Below, piece by piece: positions 3,229 to 42,700 of a stretch of 64,000 nucleotides of DNA. The stretch covers positions 177,919-241,918 of the IMG/VR virus record IMGVR_UViG_3300025770_000870. One strand, given 5' to 3'. The notes beneath the pieces were generated by a model. It saw nothing but the letters and a program-made list of their open reading frames with translations. It was not told the origin of the DNA and ran no database searches. Positions within the stretch are counted from its first letter, which is position 1, and each line of letters begins with the position of its first letter. The position numbers and the translations under genes were made by a program.

Positions 3229-3744
3229 TTAATATGTATTTGTTATCTTATTTACTATATCAACAACTGTTACCTCACAATCTTGTTCACTAGCCCATTC
3301 TCTGAACTTTACAAGGTGTTCGTGTCTATCATCATACATGATGAAATTATCACAGTTTGTTTTTTCAATTAATTTTTCGAAAAGTTTGGTTTTGAATTTG
3401 AATGTATCTCCACCATCATTTAAGTGAATTTCATCAAATGATAAATTGTGTTTATTTAGAATTTTTTCAACATTTCCTCTCATTCCTGGTGATTTTTCTA
3501 ATCTACCAGTTGCCATTATTATGTAGTTATCCTCATCTGATACTGCTTCAAGATATCTTTGATATACCCATTCATTTTTATCAACTTCGAAAACATCATT
3601 ATCCAAAGATTCCGATTTACCCCACCATCCAACATATGGCCATGTCATCTCGGTCTTTTTCAACCAAATATCTTTACCTTCAGTCGGCATTGGTGAGTGT
3701 ACTAATGTACCATCAAAATCGAAACAGTATAATGTTTTTGTCAT
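3229..3744 (-). CDS. HAD-superfamily phosphatase (Swiss-army-knife RNA-repair HAD-like)
   Basis: FDFDGTL motif I, ATGR motif II, MYDDR motif IV. Confidence 0.8.
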   Translation of the reverse strand: MTKTLYCFDFDGTLVHSPMPTEGKDIWLKKTEMTWPYVGWWGKSESLDNDVFEVDKNEWVYQRYLEAVSDEDNYIIMATGRLEKSPGMRGNVEKILNKHNLSFDEIHLNDGGDTFKFKTKLFEKLIEKTNCDNFIMYDDRHEHLVKFREWASEQDCEVTVVDIVNKITNTY

Positions 3745-3783
3745 GTTGTTATATATTTATTTTGTCATGTTGTTATATATTTA
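3736..3783. repeat. perfect 24-bp tandem duplication (2 copies) of promoter plus start codon
   Basis: TTTTGTCATGTTGTTATATATTTA at 3736-3759 and 3760-3783. Confidence 0.9.
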
Positions 3784-3872
3784 ATACAAATATAAGTAAA
3801 ATCCTTGAATTTTTCAAATAATACAAGGAGATAATTTGTTAATTTATATATACACCAAAATAAAAAAGTTTT

Positions 3873-4286
3873 ATGAAGTTAGATATTAAGTCAATTCTCA
3901 TATTAATACTTCTAGGGTTTACACTTATATTTGGGTATAAGTGGTACTTTAGTACTGATGGTGAGATTGGTGAAAAATTAGACCAATTACAGGAAAGGTA
4001 TGATGAGATTGAATTAAAGAAACAAGAATCTAATAAAAGGTTAGAAGATAATTCCTTTATTATAGATTCTTTGATGTTAGTTGATAGTCTAAATGGTGAA
4101 AAAATTGCATTACTAGAATTTAATATTAGAGAAGCTGAGGATAAAGCTACCGAAAGCGCTGATAACCTTAGTAGGATAAAAAGAGAATTAGCGGATACTA
4201 GAAAGAAGATAGAAGAATTAAAGAAAAATCCACCAAATAGAACAGGAGACGATTTACTTAATTCTATAAAAAATAAAACGAAATAA
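3873..4286 (+). CDS. membrane-anchored coiled-coil protein (possible i-spanin-like)
   Basis: N-terminal hydrophobic helix ILILILLGFTLIFGY followed by a long heptad region. Confidence 0.5.
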   Translation: MKLDIKSILILILLGFTLIFGYKWYFSTDGEIGEKLDQLQERYDEIELKKQESNKRLEDNSFIIDSLMLVDSLNGEKIALLEFNIREAEDKATESADNLSRIKRELADTRKKIEELKKNPPNRTGDDLLNSIKNKTK

Positions 4287-4786
4287 TGAAAAGTTTATTA
4301 ACATTGTTGGTTGGGTTATTAATTTCTATTAATGTACTTTCACAAGAAATAGAATATCCTAGATATGAATTAGATTCTTTGGGTCAAAGTGTTGTTGTTA
4401 TGACAATAGAACAAGCTCAAAAGCTTGATAATAATTCTGATTTATTACAACTATTTGAGCAGTTAAATGTCCAGATTGGTAGTTATGATTCGGTTTGTGT
4501 TAAGGCGGTTAATGATAAGAATATTTTGATATCAGAACAAAAAGTTTTAATAGAACAATTAAACACTAGTATTGATACTAAGGACACCACAATCGAAACT
4601 TTACAAAAACAAGTAACTGAGTATCAGTTAAGGGAGGTTATGTTTAATGATCAATTGATAAATCTAAAGGATCAGATAGATTTGAAAGATAAACAGATAC
4701 GTGAGATGAAAACTAAGATGATAATAGGAGGAGGTCTCGGAGGTCTCGCTATTGTTGGTTTAATAATATCTATATTATTACCATAA
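4286..4786 (+). CDS. exported coiled-coil protein with C-terminal TM helix (possible spanin partner)
   Basis: signal-peptide-like N-terminus, coiled coil, C-terminal GGGLGGLAIVGLIISILL; translationally coupled to the upstream ORF. Confidence 0.5.
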   Translation: MKSLLTLLVGLLISINVLSQEIEYPRYELDSLGQSVVVMTIEQAQKLDNNSDLLQLFEQLNVQIGSYDSVCVKAVNDKNILISEQKVLIEQLNTSIDTKDTTIETLQKQVTEYQLREVMFNDQLINLKDQIDLKDKQIREMKTKMIIGGGLGGLAIVGLIISILLP

Positions 4787-17323: not shown

Positions 17324-17355
17324 AAACCTCTTAAAATTAATTAAGAGGTTTTTTT
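17324..17355. terminator. bidirectional intrinsic terminator
   Basis: AAACCTCTTAA...TTAAGAGGTTTTTTT between convergent genes. Confidence 0.8.
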
Positions 17356-17809
17356 ATGCCGCAGTTTTTGGGTCGGGTATATCAAAGTAAAATTGTGTTA
17401 CGCTATTACAACTTGGAAGTTTCATTTGTTTAACTTCTAGTAAACACCCCGATTCTAATATGTTTTTTAATTCTTTACCTTTTGGTGTATCTAGAACTTT
17501 TAATACTATTTTTAACTCATCCACTTTATTATTCGTTATGATAAAAGACATTGACCTAACAAAAAATGATATACTTTTTAATAATATATCAGAATATTCT
17601 GGTTTTCCTAAACTACCATATACCGGACTATTTATTTTTGATATTTCGGTTACGTCAAATCCAATCCTTTTACCTTCGTTTAATAAAACATTAAGTTTTA
17701 TCTCACGTTTATATTGTATCCATTGTGGAAATTTAGTTAGTAATCGATCATAGTTATTTAACTCAACATCATTTCCTAAAACAACATTATATTCTAGTAA
17801 ATCATCCAT
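17354..17809 (-). CDS. degenerate prohead-protease (gp21) paralog with REIKLNVLL motif
   Basis: VYGSLGKP and LKVLDTPKGKELKNILESGC align with VYGEFDHP and IKLLSTYWGKEAKALVDDGC of the 20295 protein. Confidence 0.6.
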   Translation of the reverse strand: MDDLLEYNVVLGNDVELNNYDRLLTKFPQWIQYKREIKLNVLLNEGKRIGFDVTEISKINSPVYGSLGKPEYSDILLKSISFFVRSMSFIITNNKVDELKIVLKVLDTPKGKELKNILESGCLLEVKQMKLPSCNSVTQFYFDIPDPKTAA

Positions 17810-20215: not shown

Positions 20216-20234
20216 TCTGTAAAGAATCCACCTT
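20216..20234 (+). promoter_or_regulatory. 19-bp element upstream of the prohead protease late promoter
   Basis: TCTGTAAAGAATCCACCTT, identical copy at 22439-22457 with the same spacing to ATATATAC. Confidence 0.7.
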
Positions 20235-20294
20235 TGTTATTTTTAGAATTTACATTGTCAATATATACTAAGAAGCAAAAAATAATTATTTTAC

Positions 20295-22436
20295 ATGAAA
20301 CCGGTTTTAATAGTAGAAAATTCACAAAACCAACTTATTAGAGAGAGTAACTCTGCTAATAAGGGGTACACATTAGGTGGTACATTCACCGAATTCGGTG
20401 TCAAGAACAGAAATGAACGTATTTATTCGGCTGATAAATTTTTACCAGCATTGAATGAAATGAATGAACGTATAAGTGGCTTAGGTGCTGTTTATGGTGA
20501 ATTCGATCATCCAGACGTTTTTGACACATCACTCTCAAGAGCCTCGCATATTATCACAAAGGCAAGTTATATCCAAGAGAAAAATATCGTAGCGGGAGAG
20601 ATTAAATTACTAAGTACTTACTGGGGTAAGGAAGCAAAAGCACTTGTCGATGACGGGTGTCCTGTATTCGTTTCTTCAAGAGCTGCTGGTATTACTGAAT
20701 CTGATGGTTCAGTTTCCCTTAAAAAATTATTTACTTATGACATTGTTGCTGACCCAGGATTTGCGTCAGCTAAAATGGATGTTAAGGTACTTAATGAGTC
20801 ATTGGGATATAATGACGAAAAATCTAACTTTAGGATATATGAAATGTCCGATGAGTCAAAAATAAATGAGTTATTCAATATGAACAAAAATGAGTTTGTA
20901 ACAAAAAAACAATTGACTGACTACTCTAACTACTTAGTTAACGAATTAGCATCAACTAAGAAGACAGTTAATACAGCCATTACTAAAGGTAATGTAGCTC
21001 CAAAGAAATTGGAACAATTATTAGAGTATTATGAAGAGTTAAACAACTCTAATTCAAAAGTAGCTAAGTATCTTGATTATTTATCAGAAAAGGTACAAAT
21101 AGTAGTTAATGAGAATAAATCATTAAAGAAGACAACTGAGAAATTAGTTAAACATAATGATTATTTAGCAGAAAACTTAGAGAAATCTATTAATTACGCT
21201 GAGTATTTAGGTGAAAACTTAGATAAGAACATTGATTATTCTGAGTATTTAGCTGAGAATTTAGACAAGAACATATCTTATGCTGAGTATTTAGCTGAGA
21301 ATGTTGATAAAAACATTTCATATTCTGAGTATTTAGCTGAGAGTTTAGATAAGAACATTGCTTATTCTGAATATATCGCTGAGAATTTAGACAAAAACAT
21401 CGCTTATTCTGAGTATATCGCTGAGAATTTAGACAAAAACATTGCTTACTCTGAGTATATCGCAGAAAACGTTGATAATAATATCGCTTATTCTGAATAC
21501 TTATCTGAGCATGTTGAAGGTAACATTGCTTACTCTGAGTATATCGCAGAACATTTAGATGATAACATCGCTTATTCTGAGTATGTAGCAGAGAATCTTG
21601 ACAAATCAATTAATTATCAAGGATTGATAGTTGAGAGATTAAACGGAGATAAATTATTTGAATCTGTTGAAGGATCTGAAAGCTTCCCATCTCTAGACGA
21701 TGCTGGTTTTGAAGCTTTTGATGATGAAGAAAACAAAGATGAAGAAAATTGTAATCTTGAAGTATCATTAGATAATAATGATGAAGAAAATGGTGTTGAA
21801 GAATCTGTTGAGAATACAGATGATTACGCAACAGAAGAAAACAAAGATGAAGAAAATAAAGATGAAGAAAACAAAGAAGATAAAACTGAAAGCCATGATA
21901 TGGTAAACGGTGATAGTGATTCTGAATTATCTGAATCTATTGATAAACTAATTGAAGAAGCTAAAAAACGAAAAGTTTCTGAAACAACAGATGTGAATTT
22001 CTTGAAGTTCATGTCTAAATCACAAGTTGACAGCTTTTACGCTTTGTCAAATGACGAACAAGAGTCAGTTAAAGTCCATATAAACGAAAGAGACTACTTT
22101 ACTCAAAAAGATGTTTTGTTATTGATATCTGAAGCACTATCAACTAAGAACGAATCTCTTGAAGAGAGAATAATCAGATTGATGCCTGAAAACACAAAGC
22201 CAATCTGGGAACAATTAAACGACACTTCTAAGAAATCTATCTTGTCACAAGCTAGATTATATCCAGAAGACGTTTTAACTACTGAGGCACAAGTTGAACA
22301 TTTTTGGTCAACTAGAAAGCTAAAGACAAATGAGTCTGTAACAAAGAAACTTGTATCACATGAAAGCCTTATCCAAGAAGATAAACTTTCAGATAATGAT
22401 GTTCAAGCGATAATGGAAAGATTCAAAAATATTTAA
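20295..22436 (+). CDS. prohead protease (gp21-like) fused to a scaffold/core domain
   Basis: KNRNERIY, YGEFDHP, SHII, VSSRAAG, DIVADPG; then 14-aa repeats and an acidic region. Confidence 0.9.
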   Translation: MKPVLIVENSQNQLIRESNSANKGYTLGGTFTEFGVKNRNERIYSADKFLPALNEMNERISGLGAVYGEFDHPDVFDTSLSRASHIITKASYIQEKNIVAGEIKLLSTYWGKEAKALVDDGCPVFVSSRAAGITESDGSVSLKKLFTYDIVADPGFASAKMDVKVLNESLGYNDEKSNFRIYEMSDESKINELFNMNKNEFVTKKQLTDYSNYLVNELASTKKTVNTAITKGNVAPKKLEQLLEYYEELNNSNSKVAKYLDYLSEKVQIVVNENKSLKKTTEKLVKHNDYLAENLEKSINYAEYLGENLDKNIDYSEYLAENLDKNISYAEYLAENVDKNISYSEYLAESLDKNIAYSEYIAENLDKNIAYSEYIAENLDKNIAYSEYIAENVDNNIAYSEYLSEHVEGNIAYSEYIAEHLDDNIAYSEYVAENLDKSINYQGLIVERLNGDKLFESVEGSESFPSLDDAGFEAFDDEENKDEENCNLEVSLDNNDEENGVEESVENTDDYATEENKDEENKDEENKEDKTESHDMVNGDSDSELSESIDKLIEEAKKRKVSETTDVNFLKFMSKSQVDSFYALSNDEQESVKVHINERDYFTQKDVLLLISEALSTKNESLEERIIRLMPENTKPIWEQLNDTSKKSILSQARLYPEDVLTTEAQVEHFWSTRKLKTNESVTKKLVSHESLIQEDKLSDNDVQAIMERFKNI
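21174..21635 (+). repeat. 11 x 42-bp in-frame tandem repeat (NLDKNIAYSEYIAE consensus)
   Basis: units counted in the translation from NLEKSINYAEYLGE to NLDKSINYQGLIVE. Confidence 0.9.
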
Positions 22437-22438
22437 TG

Positions 22439-22457
22439 TCTGTAAAGAATCCACCTT
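22439..22457 (+). promoter_or_regulatory. 19-bp element upstream of the major capsid late promoter
   Basis: identical to 20216-20234. Confidence 0.7.
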
Positions 22458-22521
22458 GGTAAAAATCAAGAATTTGTGGGTTTATATATACATTAATTAA
22501 AAAAAATAAAAAAAGAAAATT

Positions 22522-24252
22522 ATGTCACACATTAGAATAGACAAACAAAAAGCTATGAAGAAATGGTCTCCAGTATTAGAGAACATGGGAGTTGCTGGTG
22601 AAGATAGATTGGATTGGATGTCAGAATATGCTGAATTTCACTCAATCAATGAAAACGCTTACGCAAACGCTTCAAACGTATCGGGTATGGGAGCTGTAGT
22701 AGCTGCACAACCTAATTCATTAGCTGGTAACACAATTGGCAATTACGCTGACTCAACTGGTTCAGGTGATGTTGGTCAAAACCTTTTACCGGTAGCGATG
22801 AAAATAGCAGCTCAAACAATCGGTTTAGATTTAGTAGCTGTTAAACCTTCTCCAGGTCCAAAAATTGATTTATTATATATCGACTTTAGATATGATGATG
22901 CTCATTTAGGAGATTCAGACGAAAGACCACAAGTCTTTAAGATTGCACCAAACGCTACATTTTTAACTACTGGTGCTGGTGGTATGACAGCAGTTATCGC
23001 TGGATTAAGAGCTCAATTAGCTACGAATACAATCACTGAAACAGTTGGTGGTTTAACTGGTAGAATGTGGAATGATATCACAGATGGTTCAGATGTAGTT
23101 GTAGAACCAACACCTTCAAAAGAAGGAAAAGTTGAATTTTTAGGATTCTCTAGAATTGATGGTTATCCAATGTTCAGAGCTTACAGACAGATGAATACAT
23201 CTCACACAGATGTTGGTTCAGCTCAAGCAAACTGGGGATTTGACCCGACTAGAAACACATTTAGTCCTACAATGTCAATGGCTTCTCAAATTACTGATTT
23301 AGGAGATGTTACTTTAACTGATGAGCCTACTATTGAATTAGTATCAGCTCTTGAAGATCACATTCCTGGTTTCTCTGCAAACTGGATGTCGGATGCTACT
23401 GGCCCTGCTGGTAACTATCCAATGGATAGAGAAATGGACGATAAAAGATACTCTGGTATCATCGGACCAAAAATTAGTTCTAAAACAGTTGCCGTAGGTA
23501 CTATTGAAGTATCTTCAGCTCTTAGAAGAACTGAAATTGAAGATATCAAAGCTAACACTGGTATGGATATCGTTCAAAAAATGGAGTCAATTCTTGTTAA
23601 TGAATTATCTCAAACAATCTCTAAGCAAATTGTTGCTAAGATATTTGAAATGGGTTCACTTAACAGATTATCTGCACCAGCTTATGTTGGAACAGCACCG
23701 GCACCATTAGCGGGACAAACAATCTTTGACTTAAACACAGCTTATGCAACTGTTGCTGCTGGTAATGGAAACGTTGGTGGTGAAACTACACACGCTGTTC
23801 AAAGAAAGCTTGTAACTAAGATAGCTCACGCTTCTAACTACATCGCTACAGAGGGACGTGTTGGTCCAGCTCAATACCTTATTACAAATGGGGGATTAGC
23901 AGCAGCACTTTCTGATATCTCTGGTTATACAATTAACCCAGTGAAATCAAAAATCAATGGTCAAGGTCAATTATACCCAGTAGGTTCAATTGGAGATATT
24001 TCAATATATGTTGATCCATATATGAGATATAACGACAATAGAATTGCTCTTGGTAGAAAGAACAATCCAGATCAACCAGGTATTATTTTTGTACCTTACT
24101 TAATGGCTCAGTCTATATCTGTAATTTCTGAAGCGACTTTCGCTCCTAGAATGTTACTAAGATCTAGATACGCTGTAACAGAAGTTGGTTGGTTCCCACA
24201 AAAACAATTTATGACTATCGAAGTTACAGATGTGAATACACTTCTTAACTAA
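22522..24252 (+). CDS. major capsid protein (T4 gp23-like)
   Basis: KKWSPVLE start, QTIGLDLVAVKP, IFVPY, TFAPRMLLRSRYAV; lies downstream of protease/scaffold. Confidence 0.92.
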   Translation: MSHIRIDKQKAMKKWSPVLENMGVAGEDRLDWMSEYAEFHSINENAYANASNVSGMGAVVAAQPNSLAGNTIGNYADSTGSGDVGQNLLPVAMKIAAQTIGLDLVAVKPSPGPKIDLLYIDFRYDDAHLGDSDERPQVFKIAPNATFLTTGAGGMTAVIAGLRAQLATNTITETVGGLTGRMWNDITDGSDVVVEPTPSKEGKVEFLGFSRIDGYPMFRAYRQMNTSHTDVGSAQANWGFDPTRNTFSPTMSMASQITDLGDVTLTDEPTIELVSALEDHIPGFSANWMSDATGPAGNYPMDREMDDKRYSGIIGPKISSKTVAVGTIEVSSALRRTEIEDIKANTGMDIVQKMESILVNELSQTISKQIVAKIFEMGSLNRLSAPAYVGTAPAPLAGQTIFDLNTAYATVAAGNGNVGGETTHAVQRKLVTKIAHASNYIATEGRVGPAQYLITNGGLAAALSDISGYTINPVKSKINGQGQLYPVGSIGDISIYVDPYMRYNDNRIALGRKNNPDQPGIIFVPYLMAQSISVISEATFAPRMLLRSRYAVTEVGWFPQKQFMTIEVTDVNTLLN

Positions 24253-24273
24253 ATAGTTAAATTGAAAATACCG

Positions 24274-24301
24274 AAAAAAGACTCCTTGTGGGTCTTTTTT
24301 C
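24274..24301 (+). terminator. intrinsic terminator after capsid gene
   Basis: AAAAAGAC(T)-loop-(G)GTCTTTTTT. Confidence 0.65.
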
Positions 24302-24326: not shown

Positions 24327-24716
24327 ATGATTAAAAAGTATAATTATTTCTTTGAGTCTAAGAAGACTAAGTTCCCTAATATTAAGAAAGTTGAAGTAGA
24401 AGGATTCTTTATTCATATAGGTAGAGACTCCAAATCTAACGACCACTTAACATTTAACGTTGCTGATGATAAAGACATCTGGATGCACGCTAAGGGTGTT
24501 CCTGGGAGTCATGTTATTATAAGAGTTAGAGAAAACTTACCAACTCAAGAAATACTAAGATATGTTGCTGAATTAGCTAAAAAGAATAGTAAAGCTAGTA
24601 AAGAAGATAATGTAACTGTTGTTTATTGCCAAAGAAAATTTGTTAAGAAAGAAAGTGGTATGAATGAGGGTCAAGTAAGAGTTGATTATATCAATGCCTA
24701 CGAAATCGTAGTTTGA
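24327..24716 (+). CDS. standalone NFACT-R (DUF814, RqcH/FbpA C-terminal RNA-binding) domain protein
   Basis: IGRDSKSNDHLT, DIWMHAKGVPGSHVII, VVYCQRKFVKK; CTS-like start MIKKYNYFFES. Confidence 0.9.
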   Translation: MIKKYNYFFESKKTKFPNIKKVEVEGFFIHIGRDSKSNDHLTFNVADDKDIWMHAKGVPGSHVIIRVRENLPTQEILRYVAELAKKNSKASKEDNVTVVYCQRKFVKKESGMNEGQVRVDYINAYEIVV

Positions 24717-26110: not shown

Positions 26111-26605
26111 ATGAAGAATATTAAGAATTATAAGAAGTTCCTAGAAAAGGAAAATATAAGAGAGGATGAGAACTCATATCTTAATGATGATATTAACGAT
26201 CCTTGGGGTGATCCAAGTGATAGATGGTCTGATCGGTCGGATTATGATGATGAGGGTTACCAGTATCTTAATGGTGGTGAGTCTAGATCTAGTGAGGATG
26301 ATAATGATGATAGAGATGATGTTCAACATTTACTTTACTTGTTAAGAACAATGTTTAAGAACAATGGTATTGAGGTTGAAATAGAACATAAGAACTTAGA
26401 TATTATGATATATTGTGTTATGAATAGAAAGGAAAGATTAAAAGATGTTATTAATGTTTTAGATGTGGCTAATAAATTGAAGAAGGATGTATTACCACAA
26501 TATGATTGTGAGTTTGAGATGTGGGAAACTAGAAAAGGTAAACCAATGTTAACCTTTAACTTCTTTTATGATGAAGGTTTGAACGATGATCGTGTTCCAT
26601 TTTAA
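26111..26605 (+). CDS. acidic hypothetical protein with CTS-like N-terminus
   Basis: starts MKNIKNYKKFLE; ends LNDDRVPF. Confidence 0.7.
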   Translation: MKNIKNYKKFLEKENIREDENSYLNDDINDPWGDPSDRWSDRSDYDDEGYQYLNGGESRSSEDDNDDRDDVQHLLYLLRTMFKNNGIEVEIEHKNLDIMIYCVMNRKERLKDVINVLDVANKLKKDVLPQYDCEFEMWETRKGKPMLTFNFFYDEGLNDDRVPF

Positions 26606-26675
26606 CTATAAACAATCCATTTTAACAACTTTTAAATATTTTAGTATATTATATATACATTAATTACAAACACTT

Positions 26676-27052
26676 GGGGGTGTCATAGAATAGATTCGCA
26701 GAGTAAAGGTAGTTATGCAGGTATCGGATTGTTAAATACCCGATTAATAAATTAAATAACAAAACAGTAAACGGAAACGTAACAGAAGTAGCAAGCAAAG
26801 AAGATTTAGTATTTGCTCTACAAAACAACCTACTTAACGTAGGGGAGTTAGTTGAAGCTTAATAGAGGAAACTCTTGAAAATTTAACAACTGATTTACAC
26901 AGTTAAAAAGGTAAGACCGTTATTTGATAATTTTTAGAAGTCTTTTCAAAAAAATTATCTAGTTTGAAAGTTTAGAAAAACTTTCTAAGCCTGTAAATGA
27001 ATAATTATTGTTAACTGAGGAAGACACGATGGGCAGTACATCGTCATCTCCA
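26676..27052 (+). ncRNA. ssrA: tmRNA (one-piece)
   Basis: 5' GGGGGTG pairs with 3' CATCTCC (27045-27051) including the G3.U70 alanine determinant and discriminator A; T-arm ACGATG/CATCGT; helix 2 TGCAGG/CCTGTA and TAGTTAT/ATAATTA; internal tag ORF 26773-26862; late promoter upstream and terminator downstream. Confidence 0.88.
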
Positions 27053-27087
27053 CAAGAGCCGATTGAATACTTTCAATTGGATTTTTT

Positions 27088-27120
27088 AACCTCACTTCCT
27101 ACATGGGAGTGAGGTTTTTT
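27088..27120 (+). terminator. intrinsic terminator after tmRNA
   Basis: AACCTCACTTCC-tacat-GGGAGTGAGGTT plus T-run. Confidence 0.85.
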
Positions 27121-27184
27121 AATGCTATAGAACTATGACGTATTGTTTTTGATAAACTAATCTATTATTTTAAATATAATAGTT

Positions 27185-27661
27185 ATGATTAATAAATTCG
27201 AAGGTCGCTGGAGATTTCTATCAAACTTCTATCCGTGTGTGGTAGAACACCAAGGTATATCATATCCATCAAATGAACATTATTATGTTGCTATGAAAGT
27301 GACGGATGAACAATTTATTAATGGTAGATATTATACCGCTGGTGATTTCAGAGAAATGATAGCGACAATACCAAGTGCTGCTATTGCTAAAAAGTTAGGA
27401 CAGAAAATAAAGGTTCGTAAAGATTGGGAAGTTAAGAAGATTGAATTTATGAACTGGGGTGTTAGAGAAAAATTTAATAACAACTCAACTCTTCGAGAAT
27501 TATTATTATCAACTGGTGACGATGAACTAATCGAGGGTAATTTTCATAAAGATACTTTTTGGGGAGTTTGTAATGGAAAGGGTAAAAACCATCTTGGTAA
27601 AATTCTTATGGAAGTAAGAAGAGAGTTGAGAGGTGAGAAGAGAGTTGGTCTGTTTATTTGA
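27185..27661 (+). CDS. NADAR (YbiA/DUF1768) family protein
   Basis: FLSNFYP, YPSNEHYY, REKF...LRELLLSTGDDELIEGN...DTFWGV...GKNHLGKILMEVR. Confidence 0.92.
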   Translation: MINKFEGRWRFLSNFYPCVVEHQGISYPSNEHYYVAMKVTDEQFINGRYYTAGDFREMIATIPSAAIAKKLGQKIKVRKDWEVKKIEFMNWGVREKFNNNSTLRELLLSTGDDELIEGNFHKDTFWGVCNGKGKNHLGKILMEVRRELRGEKRVGLFI

Positions 27662-27755: not shown

Positions 27756-28727
27756 ATGTCTGTTATTAGCTATTTTGGTGGCAAGTCCTCAAAGGTCTTC
27801 CATCAGTTCATCAACACAAGAATACCAAAAGATGGTATCAAAACTTATGTAGAACCATTCTCAGGTGCAATGGGAACGTATATGGATGACCCAAATCTTA
27901 AATTCGATACAGTTGTTTATAATGATAAGAACCGCCACCAGGTGAACTTATATAAGTGTTGTCAAAATCCAACAGAAATGTTGATACATATAGATAATCT
28001 AAAGAGTGGTTTATTACACACAACAGAAACGGATCCAATAAAAAATTGGGATTTTTATAAAGCTATTTATAAGACATTTCAAAAGAATGATTTCTTAGAT
28101 GATATGGATTTTGAGATTGGGGATTATGAAAAAGCTGCTATGTATGCTTTCTTAATTACATCAGCTCATAATTCAGTTTATCCAAGAGGAGCAGGGTTTA
28201 ATGGTTATAAGAAGAATAATGGCAAACTTAAAATAGAAGCACTTGTTAATAAACTAAAGAAGGGTAAGTACACAGAGAAATTGGAATCAATTACTGAGTT
28301 CTATAATATTGATTTTGAGGAATTGATAAACAAATATGATTCAGTAGATACATTTCTTTACTTAGACCCACCTTACGCTAGATTTGACGAGGCTAAAGGA
28401 ATGGATGATGCTAGGAGACTATTCTGGTATGGATGTGATGATGAAGGTGTCTTTGGACCCGAATCACATAGAAGGTTATTAGAAATGCTTAAAAAGACTG
28501 ATTGTAGATGGTCATTATCTTATTATTACTTTCCTTTATTAGAAGAATTATTACCAAGAGACCAATATAACTGGGTTGAGAAAGAAGTATTTAGAAGTTC
28601 TGCTCATGGTGGTAACAATTCGGATAATAAAAAGGTACAAGCTAAAGGTGTTGAGATGCTTATTATGAATTATAATCCAGAAACGGGAGAAAAAATCACT
28701 AATAAGGATGTCGAATGTGAACTTTAA
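27756..28727 (+). CDS. DNA adenine methyltransferase (Dam/D12 class)
   Basis: YFGGKS, YVEPFSGA, YNDKN, LYLDPPY. Confidence 0.9.
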   Translation: MSVISYFGGKSSKVFHQFINTRIPKDGIKTYVEPFSGAMGTYMDDPNLKFDTVVYNDKNRHQVNLYKCCQNPTEMLIHIDNLKSGLLHTTETDPIKNWDFYKAIYKTFQKNDFLDDMDFEIGDYEKAAMYAFLITSAHNSVYPRGAGFNGYKKNNGKLKIEALVNKLKKGKYTEKLESITEFYNIDFEELINKYDSVDTFLYLDPPYARFDEAKGMDDARRLFWYGCDDEGVFGPESHRRLLEMLKKTDCRWSLSYYYFPLLEELLPRDQYNWVEKEVFRSSAHGGNNSDNKKVQAKGVEMLIMNYNPETGEKITNKDVECEL

Positions 28728-29460
28728 GATTGTTGATATTTTCGAGAGTGTTAAGGATGATATTTTTTCAATTCAACCATATTTATCTATTAATAATAAT
28801 CTAAAAAATTTCACTACTAATACATTTAGTTTATCAATTCCGATGGAATTGGATGGGTTTGGTGTTGATACTGATGCTGAGATGATAAGTCTTATTAGGA
28901 TTGAGATGAATCAAAGTATTTATAAAACAATTTTGAAAGAATTATTCAATACTTCAAAATTTGATTATATAGATATTTCTAAAACTGTTAATACTCACCA
29001 ATCTGTTAATGATATTATTGATTTTTTATCTATTGATTGTATAGATAAAAAATATAAGTATTTAGTTACGAATACTTCTATGGCTAATTCAATAGGTGAT
29101 AGTTCATTATTTAACTTTAAACCAAGTGCATCGGTTGTAGAATCTCAAGGTTTACCATATTTATTTGGGTCTTTGATTAAATATGATGTTTATATAGATC
29201 CTTTTATGAAATTTGATGATAATAGAATTTGCTTATTTGATTCTTGTGAGATTAATATAGAGAATATAAATCAAACTGTTACATCAGCGGCCACATTTGC
29301 ACCTAAGATGATGATAAGTTATGATGTGGCTTTTAAAATAGCAGACTCTAAGGTTATATTTGTTTTAGATGGTAATGAATCAAGTAGTTCTTATAAGCAA
29401 TATAAACAATTACAGCGTGATATAAAAATAAATTCTTTATTAGATGGCTCAACAGATTAA
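28708..29460 (+). CDS. truncated major-capsid paralog with C-terminal RDIKINSLL motif
   Basis: YDVYIDPFMKFDDNRICL and AATFAPKMMI align with ISIYVDPYMRYNDNRIAL and EATFAPRMLL of the 22522 capsid. Confidence 0.75.
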   Translation: MSNVNFKIVDIFESVKDDIFSIQPYLSINNNLKNFTTNTFSLSIPMELDGFGVDTDAEMISLIRIEMNQSIYKTILKELFNTSKFDYIDISKTVNTHQSVNDIIDFLSIDCIDKKYKYLVTNTSMANSIGDSSLFNFKPSASVVESQGLPYLFGSLIKYDVYIDPFMKFDDNRICLFDSCEINIENINQTVTSAATFAPKMMISYDVAFKIADSKVIFVLDGNESSSSYKQYKQLQRDIKINSLLDGSTD

Positions 29461-29665
29461 TAATACATTCCAGGTGAATTCGGCTTCTAATAAAAATGCT
29501 ATTGTGGTTGATCCAGATGGATACACAACTATTGATAAATTAATACTTGTTGATCAAAAAGATGGAACTAAGTGGGATTTTTCAATTTATGATGGTGAGG
29601 TATTAGTTGAGCCACATGGTAAATCAGAAAAAAGAGAATATAGAATCAATAAGGTTATTTCTTAA
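29444..29665 (+). CDS. small protein, tail-fibre-like fragment with REYRINKVI motif
   Basis: LILVDQKDGTKWDFSIYDGEVLV resembles a fibre beta-hairpin motif; shared C-terminal motif. Confidence 0.5.
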   Translation: MAQQINNTFQVNSASNKNAIVVDPDGYTTIDKLILVDQKDGTKWDFSIYDGEVLVEPHGKSEKREYRINKVIS

Positions 29666-39755: not shown

Positions 39756-42700
39756 TTAGTTTAATTCCTCTACATTCTGAATCTTTCCATCACTCGCATC
39801 TTGTATAAATTCATCTATTGTGTTTGTTGATTTGTCAATATTTGTCAATAATCCTATTAATAAATCCAGTTGTTGTGGTATTGATCTACCTTCTAAACCA
39901 TACTTAGTTTTATCTGTAAGATTAGGTAACTTAACATTCTTTTTACCAACTGATTCTGGTTTATCTTCTCCACCCCATAATCCGGTAAATTTACCGAGGT
40001 CATCCATTGGGTGCCATCCACCATCATTCTCACTTTTTATTTGACTTAAATCATTTGCTAATTGATCAGTTTGAAGAGATTTAACTTCCTTTAGCTTTTC
40101 CATGTTGATTGCTTCTAAAGCAATTCCAAATTTCTCAAAAGAGGTGGTTAATATATCATATGAATCCGCTAATACAACCATACCACCTGCAATTCTCATT
40201 ATTGGATCCTCTCCAAATCCAAATGCGCCAGCAACACTACCCAAGAAGGATCCTTCTTTTTCTTCGACTCTTGTTAAATACTCAGCTAATCTAGTATAGT
40301 CTATTATATTTCTGCTTAATTTCTTTATAAAGAGAGGGTCTATTTTAACATCAAAATATTTTTTATTTTTATAAAAAATATAAGCTGTGTTTGCCATAGC
40401 TTGTGCTACTCTATCAATAATACCCATATCTTTTTCAGTTCTAACCACTTCCGTTTTCGTACTCGTCTTAGCACCGAAACCAGCAAATCCTCCTGATTTA
40501 CTACTTGTAGTTTTTGTTGAAGTAGTTACTAACATATCATCAAGCCATTTTCCCAACTTTGCGAATCCCATTACATTCGTAGCTATATTTGGTATAAATT
40601 TTGGATCTAGTTTAACTGCAAAATATCTTTTATTATCAAAAAGAATACGGGCTGTGTTTGCCATTGATTGAACACCACCCTCCAACATTGAGGAGTTCAC
40701 AGAAAAACTGTATTCGCTGTATCCAGCCATAGTTAAATCATAAAATATATCTAAAAAGGAATTTATCGCCTTTCGAATACCGATACCCCATGCTTCATCA
40801 GGATGATTTTGCCAATATTCTTTCCCAACACTCCCTAGTGTTTCTCCAGCACTCCTTATAGATCTAGCTATGATTCTTATCCCAGATCCTAGTGATTGTG
40901 CTACTTCCTCTTGGCTTGGTCCAGTCCATCCACCACCATTTGTCATCATCAGATTAAAGACTTCCGAGAACGATCCAATTGCTTCTGCAACACCTTTACC
41001 CCAACCTTTACCAGGAACATTGTCCTTTTTCCATATTTCTGGGATAGTGTCATAAAATATCCAACCCGCATCAACTATCGCCCTTGAAACCGATCGAATT
41101 CCGTAACTCATTGCCTTTATTGTCGTAACAGACGAAGAATACCAGCTCGTATTGTTCATAGCTTCAAATACTGGTGCAAATGAGTTAATTGCTGCTCCAA
41201 CACCTTCTCCCCAACGTTTTTTTGGATAGTTTTTCTTAAATGCTGCTTTATTTTCTGCGAATATACCCGCTGCATCTATAATAGCATAAGATATAGATCG
41301 GATAGCTCTTTCCATATCAGCTACTGATGGTCCATTGGACCACCCTCCTTGATTGTTCAAAACCTCATATACTGGTGCGAATGCGCCAATTGCTGTTCCA
41401 ACCCCTTCGGCCCAACGTTTTGATGGTCCATCCTTGAATTGGTCACTCGCTCCGGAAAATTTATCAGCGGCTGATATAATACCATCAGAAACCGTTGTGA
41501 TAGCATTCGTAAAATCATCAGGACCTACACCACTACCACCAAGTATTGACATTATAGAATTCATCTGCATCATTTTATAAATAGGCATAAATGCTCCTAA
41601 TGCTATCGATATTCCTTCTGCCCACTCTTTTGTTGGACCACCTTTATAATTTCCCTTATAAAGAGTATGTGATACGGCTACTATTGTATCTGCTATCGTC
41701 AACATCATACCCTGTGCTACTAAAAATGGATCATCTCCTCCGAAGAATGAAATAATAGCACCCGCTACACTCATGACACCCAATGCCATTATAATTGGTG
41801 TAAATGTTAAATATAATAATGCTGTAGCTGTTGCCCATTCTAACATACCTGCATTATCATATTTACCCTTGGATAGAATATCTGATACTTTTGCTATAGT
41901 AGCAGCTACAACTAGTATAGCACCTAAACCAGCTAAAAATATTAGTGCTTGTGGACCAAATACCATCAGACCCAAGAGTATAGCGGCGGTAGCCATAACT
42001 GTCATAGCTAAGGCCACTCCGGCTAACCACTCTATACCTGGGTAGGTTTCATAAGTACCTAATGCTTGAATGTAATCCAATGCTACAATAGCAAGTGCTA
42101 CAACTAGTATAGCAACTAAACCAGCTAAAAATACTAGTGCTTGTGGACCAAATACAAACGATCCTAAGAGTACAGCAGCGACACCCATCGCTACCATACT
42201 TAAACCTACTCCGATTATCCAATCTAAACCTGGATATGTATCATAATTACCTAATGCTAAAATGTGTGATGTTACCATTACTGCTACCGCTATAATCAAA
42301 ATTGCTAATCCACCTTTTAATAGATCAACAACACCCATCTTACTTAATACCTTCATTGGTCCGACTAATGCAATAGTAAGACCGGCCATTAATACACCAA
42401 TTGCTGCTATTTTAAGTATTAGTCCCCAACTTATATCAGCGGTTAATGCTAAAATGTGTGATGATACCATAATCGCTATTGATATCAATGTAAAGAATAT
42501 TGGTATTTTAGGGAGTGATGACCATTCCATTTTATTCATTGCTTTAACTATTTTTACCATCCCAAATGATAAAACAACAAATAATATTGCTATAAGTACT
42601 GATGTAAACCATTGCATAAGACCCACTGGTTGTACTAAAGAGAGTGCGTATGATGCTCCTGCTATACCTAGTGCGATAGCTGGTAGAATTAATGGTAAGA

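Follow-up and report, generated by a model that had tools for sequence, protein, structure and literature searches.

A compact, C-terminally tagged paralogue of the major capsid protein with a predicted HK97 fold in a marine megaphage

The window analysed here is the whole 64,000-nt stretch at positions 177,919 to 241,918 of the IMG/VR record IMGVR_UViG_3300025770_000870, that is, the last 64 kb of a 241,918-bp contig. A 483-kb contig (G001) carries identical copies of the capsid and mini-capsid genes, and we joined the two into a composite of about 546 kb, in which an 18-bp duplication at the junction does not matter here. DNA runs that hold the stretch are marine or seawater metagenomes. The following features of the window, all on the + strand, are referred to below:

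22522-24252 (+), gp23-type major capsid protein (576 aa), the parent paralogue, followed by a strong terminator at 24273-24301
27059-27116 (+), tandem intrinsic terminators that separate the head-gene and RNA transcripts from the operon
27140-27184 (+), putative operon promoter region with a conserved element, GATAAACTAAT in the window and TGGTAAACT in the related loci L004, L010 and L011, then TAAATATAAT
27185-27661 (+), NADAR-domain gene, first gene of the operon
27756-28727 (+), D12-class N6-adenine DNA methyltransferase gene
28708-29460 (+), mini-capsid gene (250 aa)
28726-28836 (+), predicted N-terminal helix (residues 7-18) and short beta-hairpin (residues 26-43) that stand in for the N-arm and E-loop
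28870-29367 (+), predicted spine helix (residues 55-80) and P/A-domain core (residues 85-220), including the lineage motif DPFMKFDDNRI
29386-29445 (+), predicted family-specific C-terminal helix (residues 227-246), outside the HK97 core
29416-29442 (+), C-terminal tag RDIKINSLL (R237-L245)
29444-29665 (+), small 73-aa gene (small73) that overlaps the mini-capsid gene and whose product ends in the same tag (REYRINKVI, nt 29633-29659)

To test whether the 250-aa ORF is related to the capsid protein, as a first-pass annotation had claimed from four aligned sequence blocks, we compared the two translations. The observation held: all four blocks are present, BLASTP of the ORF against the capsid ORF gave 30% identity over 108 aa (E 3e-15), and a profile of the ORF's family aligned collinearly with capsid residues 334-382 and 453-554. 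The capsid ORF matches Pfam Gp23 at E 2.7e-26, the NADAR-domain gene matches PF08719 at E 5.1e-28, and the methyltransferase matches PF02086 at E 3.4e-16 and has an intact DPPY motif. The methyltransferase stop lies at 28727, such that it overlaps the mini-capsid start by 20 nt. The mini-capsid itself matched no Pfam family at E<=0.01, including Gp23 (PF07068), and its homology was seen only against its own lineage's capsid proteins and in language-model features. A second, much weaker relative, a 135-aa ORF, lies elsewhere in the genome (G000 110653-111057).

The mini-capsid gene founds a family of its own. A word-indexed search found nine close homologues of 58-94% identity, and an exhaustive profile search found 592 representatives at E<=1e-3 and 225 at E<=1e-10, with nearly all of the best 150 being 215-280 aa long. 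Against a 94%-identical allele, omega was 0.38. The capsid protein is 73-78% identical to those of the 634-kb and 642-kb 'uncultured phage' genomes LR745206 and LR756502, 52-53% identical to LR756504 and LR756501, 36% to LR756500, and about 28-30% to Lak phages and Tenacibaculum phage PTm1. The gene order of protease, capsid, NFACT-R protein, peptidase, acidic protein, a 579-bp gap, NADAR, methylase, mini-capsid and small73 is conserved in LR745206, LR756502 and four IMG/VR contigs. The methylase, mini-capsid and small-gene order also holds beside a very divergent family member (locus L023), although the methylase is missing in one locus (L013), and small73 follows the mini-capsid gene in every locus long enough to show it.

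Comparison of a predicted structure with the HK97 fold had been named in advance as the check that could overturn the capsid reading, and the prediction came out in its favour. With 146 family members as the alignment, AlphaFold gave a mean pLDDT of 88.9 and a pTM of 0.85. The model contains a helix (7-18), a short hairpin (strands 26-28 and 36-43), a 26-residue spine helix (55-80), the A and P domain elements up to residue 220, and an extra helix (227-246), for which block-mean pLDDT is about 90 for residues 221-240 and 74 for residues 241-250. Foldseek and VIA-align placed the model firmly in the HK97 fold, with the best matches to T4 gp23 (Z 13.0) and T4 gp24 (Z 12.2 and 12.0), followed by T7, HK97, encapsulins and others at Z 10-12 (about 11 for encapsulins and HK97), and about 200 of the 250 residues aligned. 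Alignments with encapsulins and the HK97 prohead begin at model residues 1-5 (the HK97 gp5 alignment covers its residues 119-383), those with T4 begin at 21-22, and all of these end near residue 222. The annotation's statement that the N-arm/E-loop half is missing therefore overstates the loss: about 330 N-terminal residues of the capsid protein have no counterpart, but the model retains a short N-terminal helix and hairpin before the spine helix, so that the core fold is essentially complete and carries a new C-terminal helix. The capsid proteins end right after the last strand, which rules out the idea that the tag is the capsid protein's own C terminus.

To determine the origin of the gene, we compared it with capsid proteins within and outside the lineage. 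The mini-capsid shares the derived motif (V/I)Y(V/I)DP(Y/F)M(K/R)(F/Y)(N/D)DNRI with the Mahaphage and PTm1 capsid proteins, whereas T4 gp23 and gp24 read YIDQYAKQDYFTV and YCDTNSPLDYVIV there. It therefore arose by a duplication inside this Bacteroidota-megaphage capsid lineage and is not an orthologue of gp24. Profile comparisons with T4 gp24 and gp23 were weak (hhalign E 0.0015 and 0.036, probabilities 17% and 1%); the best PDB sequence match of the family profile was gp24, at E 0.06. No full-length second capsid paralogue exists in the complete genomes LR745206 and LR756502.

The only invariant residue of the family, R237 (146 members), lies inside the C-terminal motif RDxKI(D/N)xIL. To survey for this motif in other proteins, we scanned six-frame translations with R[DNE]x[KR][IL][DNSE]x[ILV][ILV]. 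The composite genome gave 28 hits, of which 25 were within 16 residues of a stop and 22 in ORFs of at least 60 aa, with none in the reversed-sequence control; LR756502 gave 85 hits, of which 67 were C-terminal, with one control hit in total and none C-terminal. A strict DNA pattern gave 18 hits in LR745206 and 10 in LR756502, with controls of 0. Arginine is encoded by five different codons, Ile and Leu codons vary, and the x positions are free; conservation therefore acts on the peptide, and we reject the idea that the tag is a by-product of a DNA-level signal. All small73 orthologues keep R64 and the tag. After trimming the tag, 87 tagged proteins fell into 77 BLAST clusters, of which only eight were shared between the two genomes, including the mini-capsid and two weak, shorter relatives of it at G000 110163-111057. 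Tagged proteins are small (median 124 aa in LR756502), and Pfam and PHROG searches of 10 from this phage and 65 from LR756502 found nothing informative. Literature searches found no description of this family or motif.

We next asked whether the tag and the tailed mini-capsid occur together. Both are present in three genomes (this phage, LR745206 and LR756502). C-terminal tags are absent, by the six-frame scan unless noted, from PTm1 (225 kb), LR756504 (636 kb), LR756500 (462 kb), LR756501 (735 kb; strict DNA pattern), a 288-kb contig that CheckV rates 100% complete (G005) and a 100-kb contig (G002), and none of these, four complete relatives and two contigs, has a tailed mini-capsid. This co-occurrence rests on nine genomes or contigs, and the negatives are mostly more distant relatives. 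G002 is the most telling case, since its capsid protein is 73% and its protease 82% identical to this phage's, as close as LR756502's are, yet its head region keeps the peptidase and NADAR genes but has no methylase, no mini-capsid and no tag. Because G002 is only a fragment this stays provisional, but the same capsid machinery appears to work without the gene, and the gene and the tag seem to come and go together. Tail-less, shorter relatives of the capsid's A-domain region occur among replication-type genes in PTm1 (ORF-116, 191 aa), LR756500 (a 313-aa ORF) and LR756501 (a 188-aa ORF). A search by phyletic pattern for a tag receptor returned 172 genes shared with LR756502 and absent from the tag-negative genomes, too many to single one out.

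The gene is a hot spot of divergence and recombination. Across orthologous loci the capsid protein is 68-85% identical while the mini-capsid is only 28-58% identical. Against the locus L010 the flanking DNA is about 90% identical, but identity drops to 58-64% inside the gene, whereas against the locus L187 the gene has dS 0.08 while the flanks have 0.37-0.45, and omega is 0.38 against 0.04-0.17. That these comparisons point in opposite directions indicates that alleles of this gene are exchanged independently of their flanks.

The first-pass annotation had also placed the operon under an early-type rather than a late promoter, which has no basis here: a sigma-70-type scan found 69 sites against 70.8 expected from shuffled sequence. 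The operon is insulated from the head genes by the tandem terminators. The protease and capsid genes share AATCCACCTTG, then a spacer, then TATATATAC, conserved in relatives, and the operon lacks this arrangement and has instead the TGGTAAACT...TAAATATAAT element conserved in L004, L010 and L011, whose promoter function is inferred. A TATATATAC / AATATATA element is enriched upstream of genes, and the AATCCACCTT element is confined to the protease and capsid genes; we assigned none of these elements to a temporal class. ARAGORN and Rfam at gathering thresholds found no RNA in 26606-27184. Transcription timing had likewise been put forward as a test, since late expression would favour a vertex protein. 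In three metatranscriptomes from two studies, contigs cover the capsid gene (depth 6-22) and the 'intergenic' stretch 26609-27061 (depth 19-30), ending at 27046-27061, while the operon shows only a 220-nt piece at depth 5; in a fourth run, a 90-95%-identical strain shows low-depth pieces. These are assembled contigs without a time series, DNA carry-over is possible and the prohead protease cleavage motif is unknown, so the data do not tell late expression and processing from the alternatives, and we take from them only that the operon is not expressed at capsid-gene level.

The interpretation in the first-pass annotation was thus partly supported: the gene is a true paralogue of the phage's own gp23-type capsid protein, is predicted to have the HK97 fold and is not an ordinary gp24-type vertex gene, but the loss of the N-terminal half was overstated and the promoter class unsupported. 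Our tentative reading is that the mini-capsid is a conserved structural component of a clade-specific, tag-mediated recruitment system. In this view, after duplication inside the marine Mahaphage/PTm1 lineage it lost the propeptide, N-arm, insertion domain and long E-loop, and gained an amphipathic C-terminal helix carrying the tag, consensus (hydrophobic)-x-R-[DEN]-x-K-[IL]-[NDSE]-x-[ILV]-[LI], 0-16 residues before the stop. It would oligomerize through the retained capsomer (A-domain) interface into rings or a small shell, and the tags would act as docking peptides that bring together the mini-capsid, its partner small73 and the variable tagged proteins, either on the mini-capsid itself, as encapsulin cargo does, or on a common conserved receptor such as the prohead. 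It would be an accessory gene and not an essential penton. The grounds for this reading are the retained capsomer-forming core, a portable C-terminal helix shared with at least 77 unrelated small protein families, the strict co-occurrence, dispensability in relatives with near-identical head genes, the hot-spot evolution, and the low RNA representation relative to the capsid gene. Our analyses establish the homology, the fold (from a predicted structure), the family, the tag with its position and peptide-level conservation, the co-occurrence, and the fast, mosaic evolution, whereas oligomerization, docking and the location of the complex are inferences, the docking role by analogy with encapsulins (PMC8346489) and microcompartment encapsulation peptides.

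Several points weigh against this reading. No binding has been shown, and the only complex prediction, mini-capsid residues 1-224 with small73, scored 0.08 and counts neither for nor against binding. The mini-capsid body is weakly conserved, with only G154 and D164 near-invariant and both shared with the capsid protein, which fits poorly with the body being the receptor of an invariant peptide and argues for another receptor, although the encapsulin-like N-terminal helix and the co-occurrence argue for the mini-capsid. The candidate shell carries the tag itself, unlike encapsulins, the tagged proteins have no recognizable domains, so their biology is unknown, and the position downstream of the head genes also fits a virion role.

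The main rival, which we consider less likely, is a specialized minor virion protein, either a penton (a functional analogue of T4 gp24) or another special-site capsid subunit, with the C-terminal helix anchoring it to neighbouring hexamers or the scaffold. Consistent with this, it is the only other protein with the capsid core fold found in LR745206 and LR756502, it lies 4.5 kb downstream of the capsid gene on the same strand, as gene 24 follows gene 23 in T4, its core is complete with gp24 among the top structural matches, and a low transcript level would suit 55 copies per particle. However, it is not orthologous to gp24, it lacks the N-arm, insertion domain and long E-loop, which form the contacts between capsid subunits in T4, it is absent from relatives with 52-74% identical capsid proteins, including the CheckV-complete 288-kb contig and the contig with an 82%-identical protease, it evolves much faster than the capsid protein with shuffled alleles, and its tag is shared with at least 77 unrelated small protein families. 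Pentamer formation at the eleven non-portal vertices was not examined, and no virion data exist.

A somewhat weaker possibility is that the tag is a packaging signal loading a variable arsenal of small proteins into the head for injection with the DNA, the mini-capsid being one conserved passenger or an inner-core element and the receptor being the scaffold/protease core or the capsid protein's inner face. Many unrelated, fast-turnover small ORFans sharing one terminal peptide is the pattern expected of delivery signals, they cluster partly near the ends of the LR745206 and LR756502 records, and large phage heads carry many internal proteins, targeted in T4 by an N-terminal sequence. The receptor would need to be highly conserved, as the capsid protein and protease are. 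However, several small ORFs already share the capsid protein's N-terminal region and are better candidates for head targeting, one tagged protein has an N-terminal hydrophobic segment that looks transmembrane, and G002 has no tags despite its similar capsid protein and protease. Least likely is a soluble capsid mimic, a decoy for host defences that sense the capsid protein or a modulator of capsomer assembly with the tag as an unrelated signal such as a degron: the protein retains the most conserved capsid segment (GxxGxxxxYVDPYMxxDDNRI), diverges and exchanges alleles as arms-race loci do, and has tail-less relatives among replication genes, but no defence context or experimental hint exists, an omega of 0.38 is still purifying selection, and the tag's co-occurrence with the protein is left unexplained.

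Capsid-fold proteins that have left the capsid are rare, and we know of no described capsid-gene duplicate of this kind retained within a phage genome. The tag marks about 3% of ORFs of at least 60 aa in this phage (22 of 706), and three times as many ORFs in LR756502, offering a handle on ORFans that otherwise have no annotation. If it is a targeting signal, it defines a testable protein-sorting pathway in the largest known phages, and would offer a short portable peptide and a small HK97 scaffold as tools. A more far-reaching possibility, which we regard as unlikely, is that a subset of marine megaphages encodes an encapsulin-like system of its own, in which an HK97-fold mini-shell or hub recruits a large, rapidly changing set of small effector proteins through a conserved C-terminal encapsulation peptide, RDxKI(D/N)xIL, for co-packaging and injection or for an intracellular compartment.

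Among known systems, the T4 vertex protein gp24 (PDB 1YUE, 5VF3) is likewise an HK97-fold paralogue of a gp23-type capsid protein encoded downstream of the capsid gene. The mini-capsid differs in its length (250 aa against 427 aa), in lacking the insertion domain, N-arm and long E-loop, in its independent duplication (sharing DPYMxxDDNRI with its own lineage's capsid proteins), in its extra tagged helix and in its absence from close relatives. The T4 capsid targeting sequence of internal proteins and microcompartment encapsulation peptides are also short terminal peptides, shared by unrelated proteins, that direct them to a protein shell; the T4 signal is N-terminal and cleaved, microcompartment shells have a different fold, and neither receptor nor destination has been identified for the tag described here. 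Family 1 encapsulins with C-terminal cargo-loading peptides (PMC8346489) share a compact HK97 fold of about 250-280 aa with an N-terminal helix, which for the mini-capsid rests on a predicted structure only, and in both cases many proteins carry a short conserved C-terminal peptide, here 22-67 per genome including the product of the adjacent gene. There is no match to the encapsulin Pfam family (PF04454), the gene is phage-encoded, and the peptide is charged and predicted helical in the mini-capsid model, unlike encapsulin cargo peptides. Since the shell candidate carries the peptide too and binding is not shown, these data do not settle whether the tagged proteins are cargo; assembly into a closed icosahedral shell was not assayed. 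Family 4 'A-domain' encapsulins (PMC8346489) are truncated derivatives of the HK97 fold encoded directly downstream of an enzyme gene, often with overlapping genes, an arrangement similar to that with the D12 methylase. The 250-aa protein retains the P-domain, spine helix and hairpin and not only the A-domain (about 100 aa), descends from the gp23 family in phages, and has no known complex with the enzyme, whereas the still shorter relatives (the 135-aa ORF in this phage, PTm1 ORF-116 and the 188-aa ORF of LR756501) resemble the Family 4 proteins in size.

The following further features of the window were noticed in passing:

17354-17809 (- strand): 151-aa ORF with the tag motif near its N-terminus
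20225-20294 and 22437-22521: stretches upstream of the protease and capsid genes with a shared element
20295-22436: 713-aa head protease (phrog_207)
24327-24716: NFACT-R domain protein
26111-26605: 164-aa acidic protein
26606-27184: 579-bp 'intergenic' gap, with an RNA at about 26676-27061 (+ strand)

The head protease contains a long run of 13-residue tandem repeats (AENLDKNIAYSEYI...) followed by an acidic stretch, suggesting a fused scaffold. The protease and capsid genes share an upstream element, CTGTAAAGAATCCACCTT(T/G)G, followed about 30-35 nt later by TATATA(T)AC, and the capsid-gene copy is conserved in related loci. TATATATAC and AATATATA are 12-13-fold enriched upstream of genes genome-wide. 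Several small ORFs (88-180 aa open frames) share the N-terminal region of the capsid protein, residues about 7-117. They are located at 234152-234280, 436603-436812 and 41161-41307 of G001:C1 and 103607-103753 of G000:C1 (contigs of this phage), and at 291419-291667 of LR745206. This region looks like a shared propeptide or head-targeting segment of internal head proteins.

Outside the window, two adjacent, overlapping ORFs of 166 and 135 aa (G000:C1:110163-111057) both carry the tag and show weak similarity to the A-domain part of the mini-capsid family (HMMER E 5e-6; hhalign E 3e-4 and 1.4e-3). The pair is conserved in LR756502 at 91.1-91.5 kb. The 151-aa ORF at 17354-17809 carries the motif (REIKLNVLL) near its N-terminus instead of its C-terminus, and is one of the three non-C-terminal hits in the composite genome. 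In LR756501 (542.3-543.1 kb, locus L037), a 188-aa truncated capsid A-domain relative with an N-terminal charged, helix-like stretch lies directly upstream of a gene for a ribosomal protein bS21-like product, the latter assigned by eye. In L023, a locus of a distant relative, a 273-aa ORF (3532-4353) with a faint LAGLIDADG_3 match sits immediately upstream of the methylase and mini-capsid pair, suggesting that the region is a site for homing endonuclease insertion.

The 579-bp gap yielded metatranscriptome contigs at depth 19-30, equal to or above the capsid gene, and these contigs end at the first of two tandem terminators. Against the related locus L010, the gap is better conserved (0.80-0.95 nt identity) than the neighbouring acidic-protein gene (0.65). 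A search of Rfam gave only a sub-threshold, full-length tmRNA match (8.8 bits, E 0.26, 26676-27055), and ARAGORN found nothing. A 7-bp acceptor-like pairing (GGGGGUG / CAUCUCC) and an ORF ending ...GELVEA with a double stop are visible by eye, and the transcript may be a divergent phage tmRNA or a new abundant RNA. The same region encodes, directly after the capsid gene, the NFACT-R domain protein (Pfam E 8e-16), an RNA-binding domain of the ribosome-quality-control type. The acidic protein ends in ...NDDRVPF, which resembles the acidic C-terminal tip of bacterial SSB proteins.
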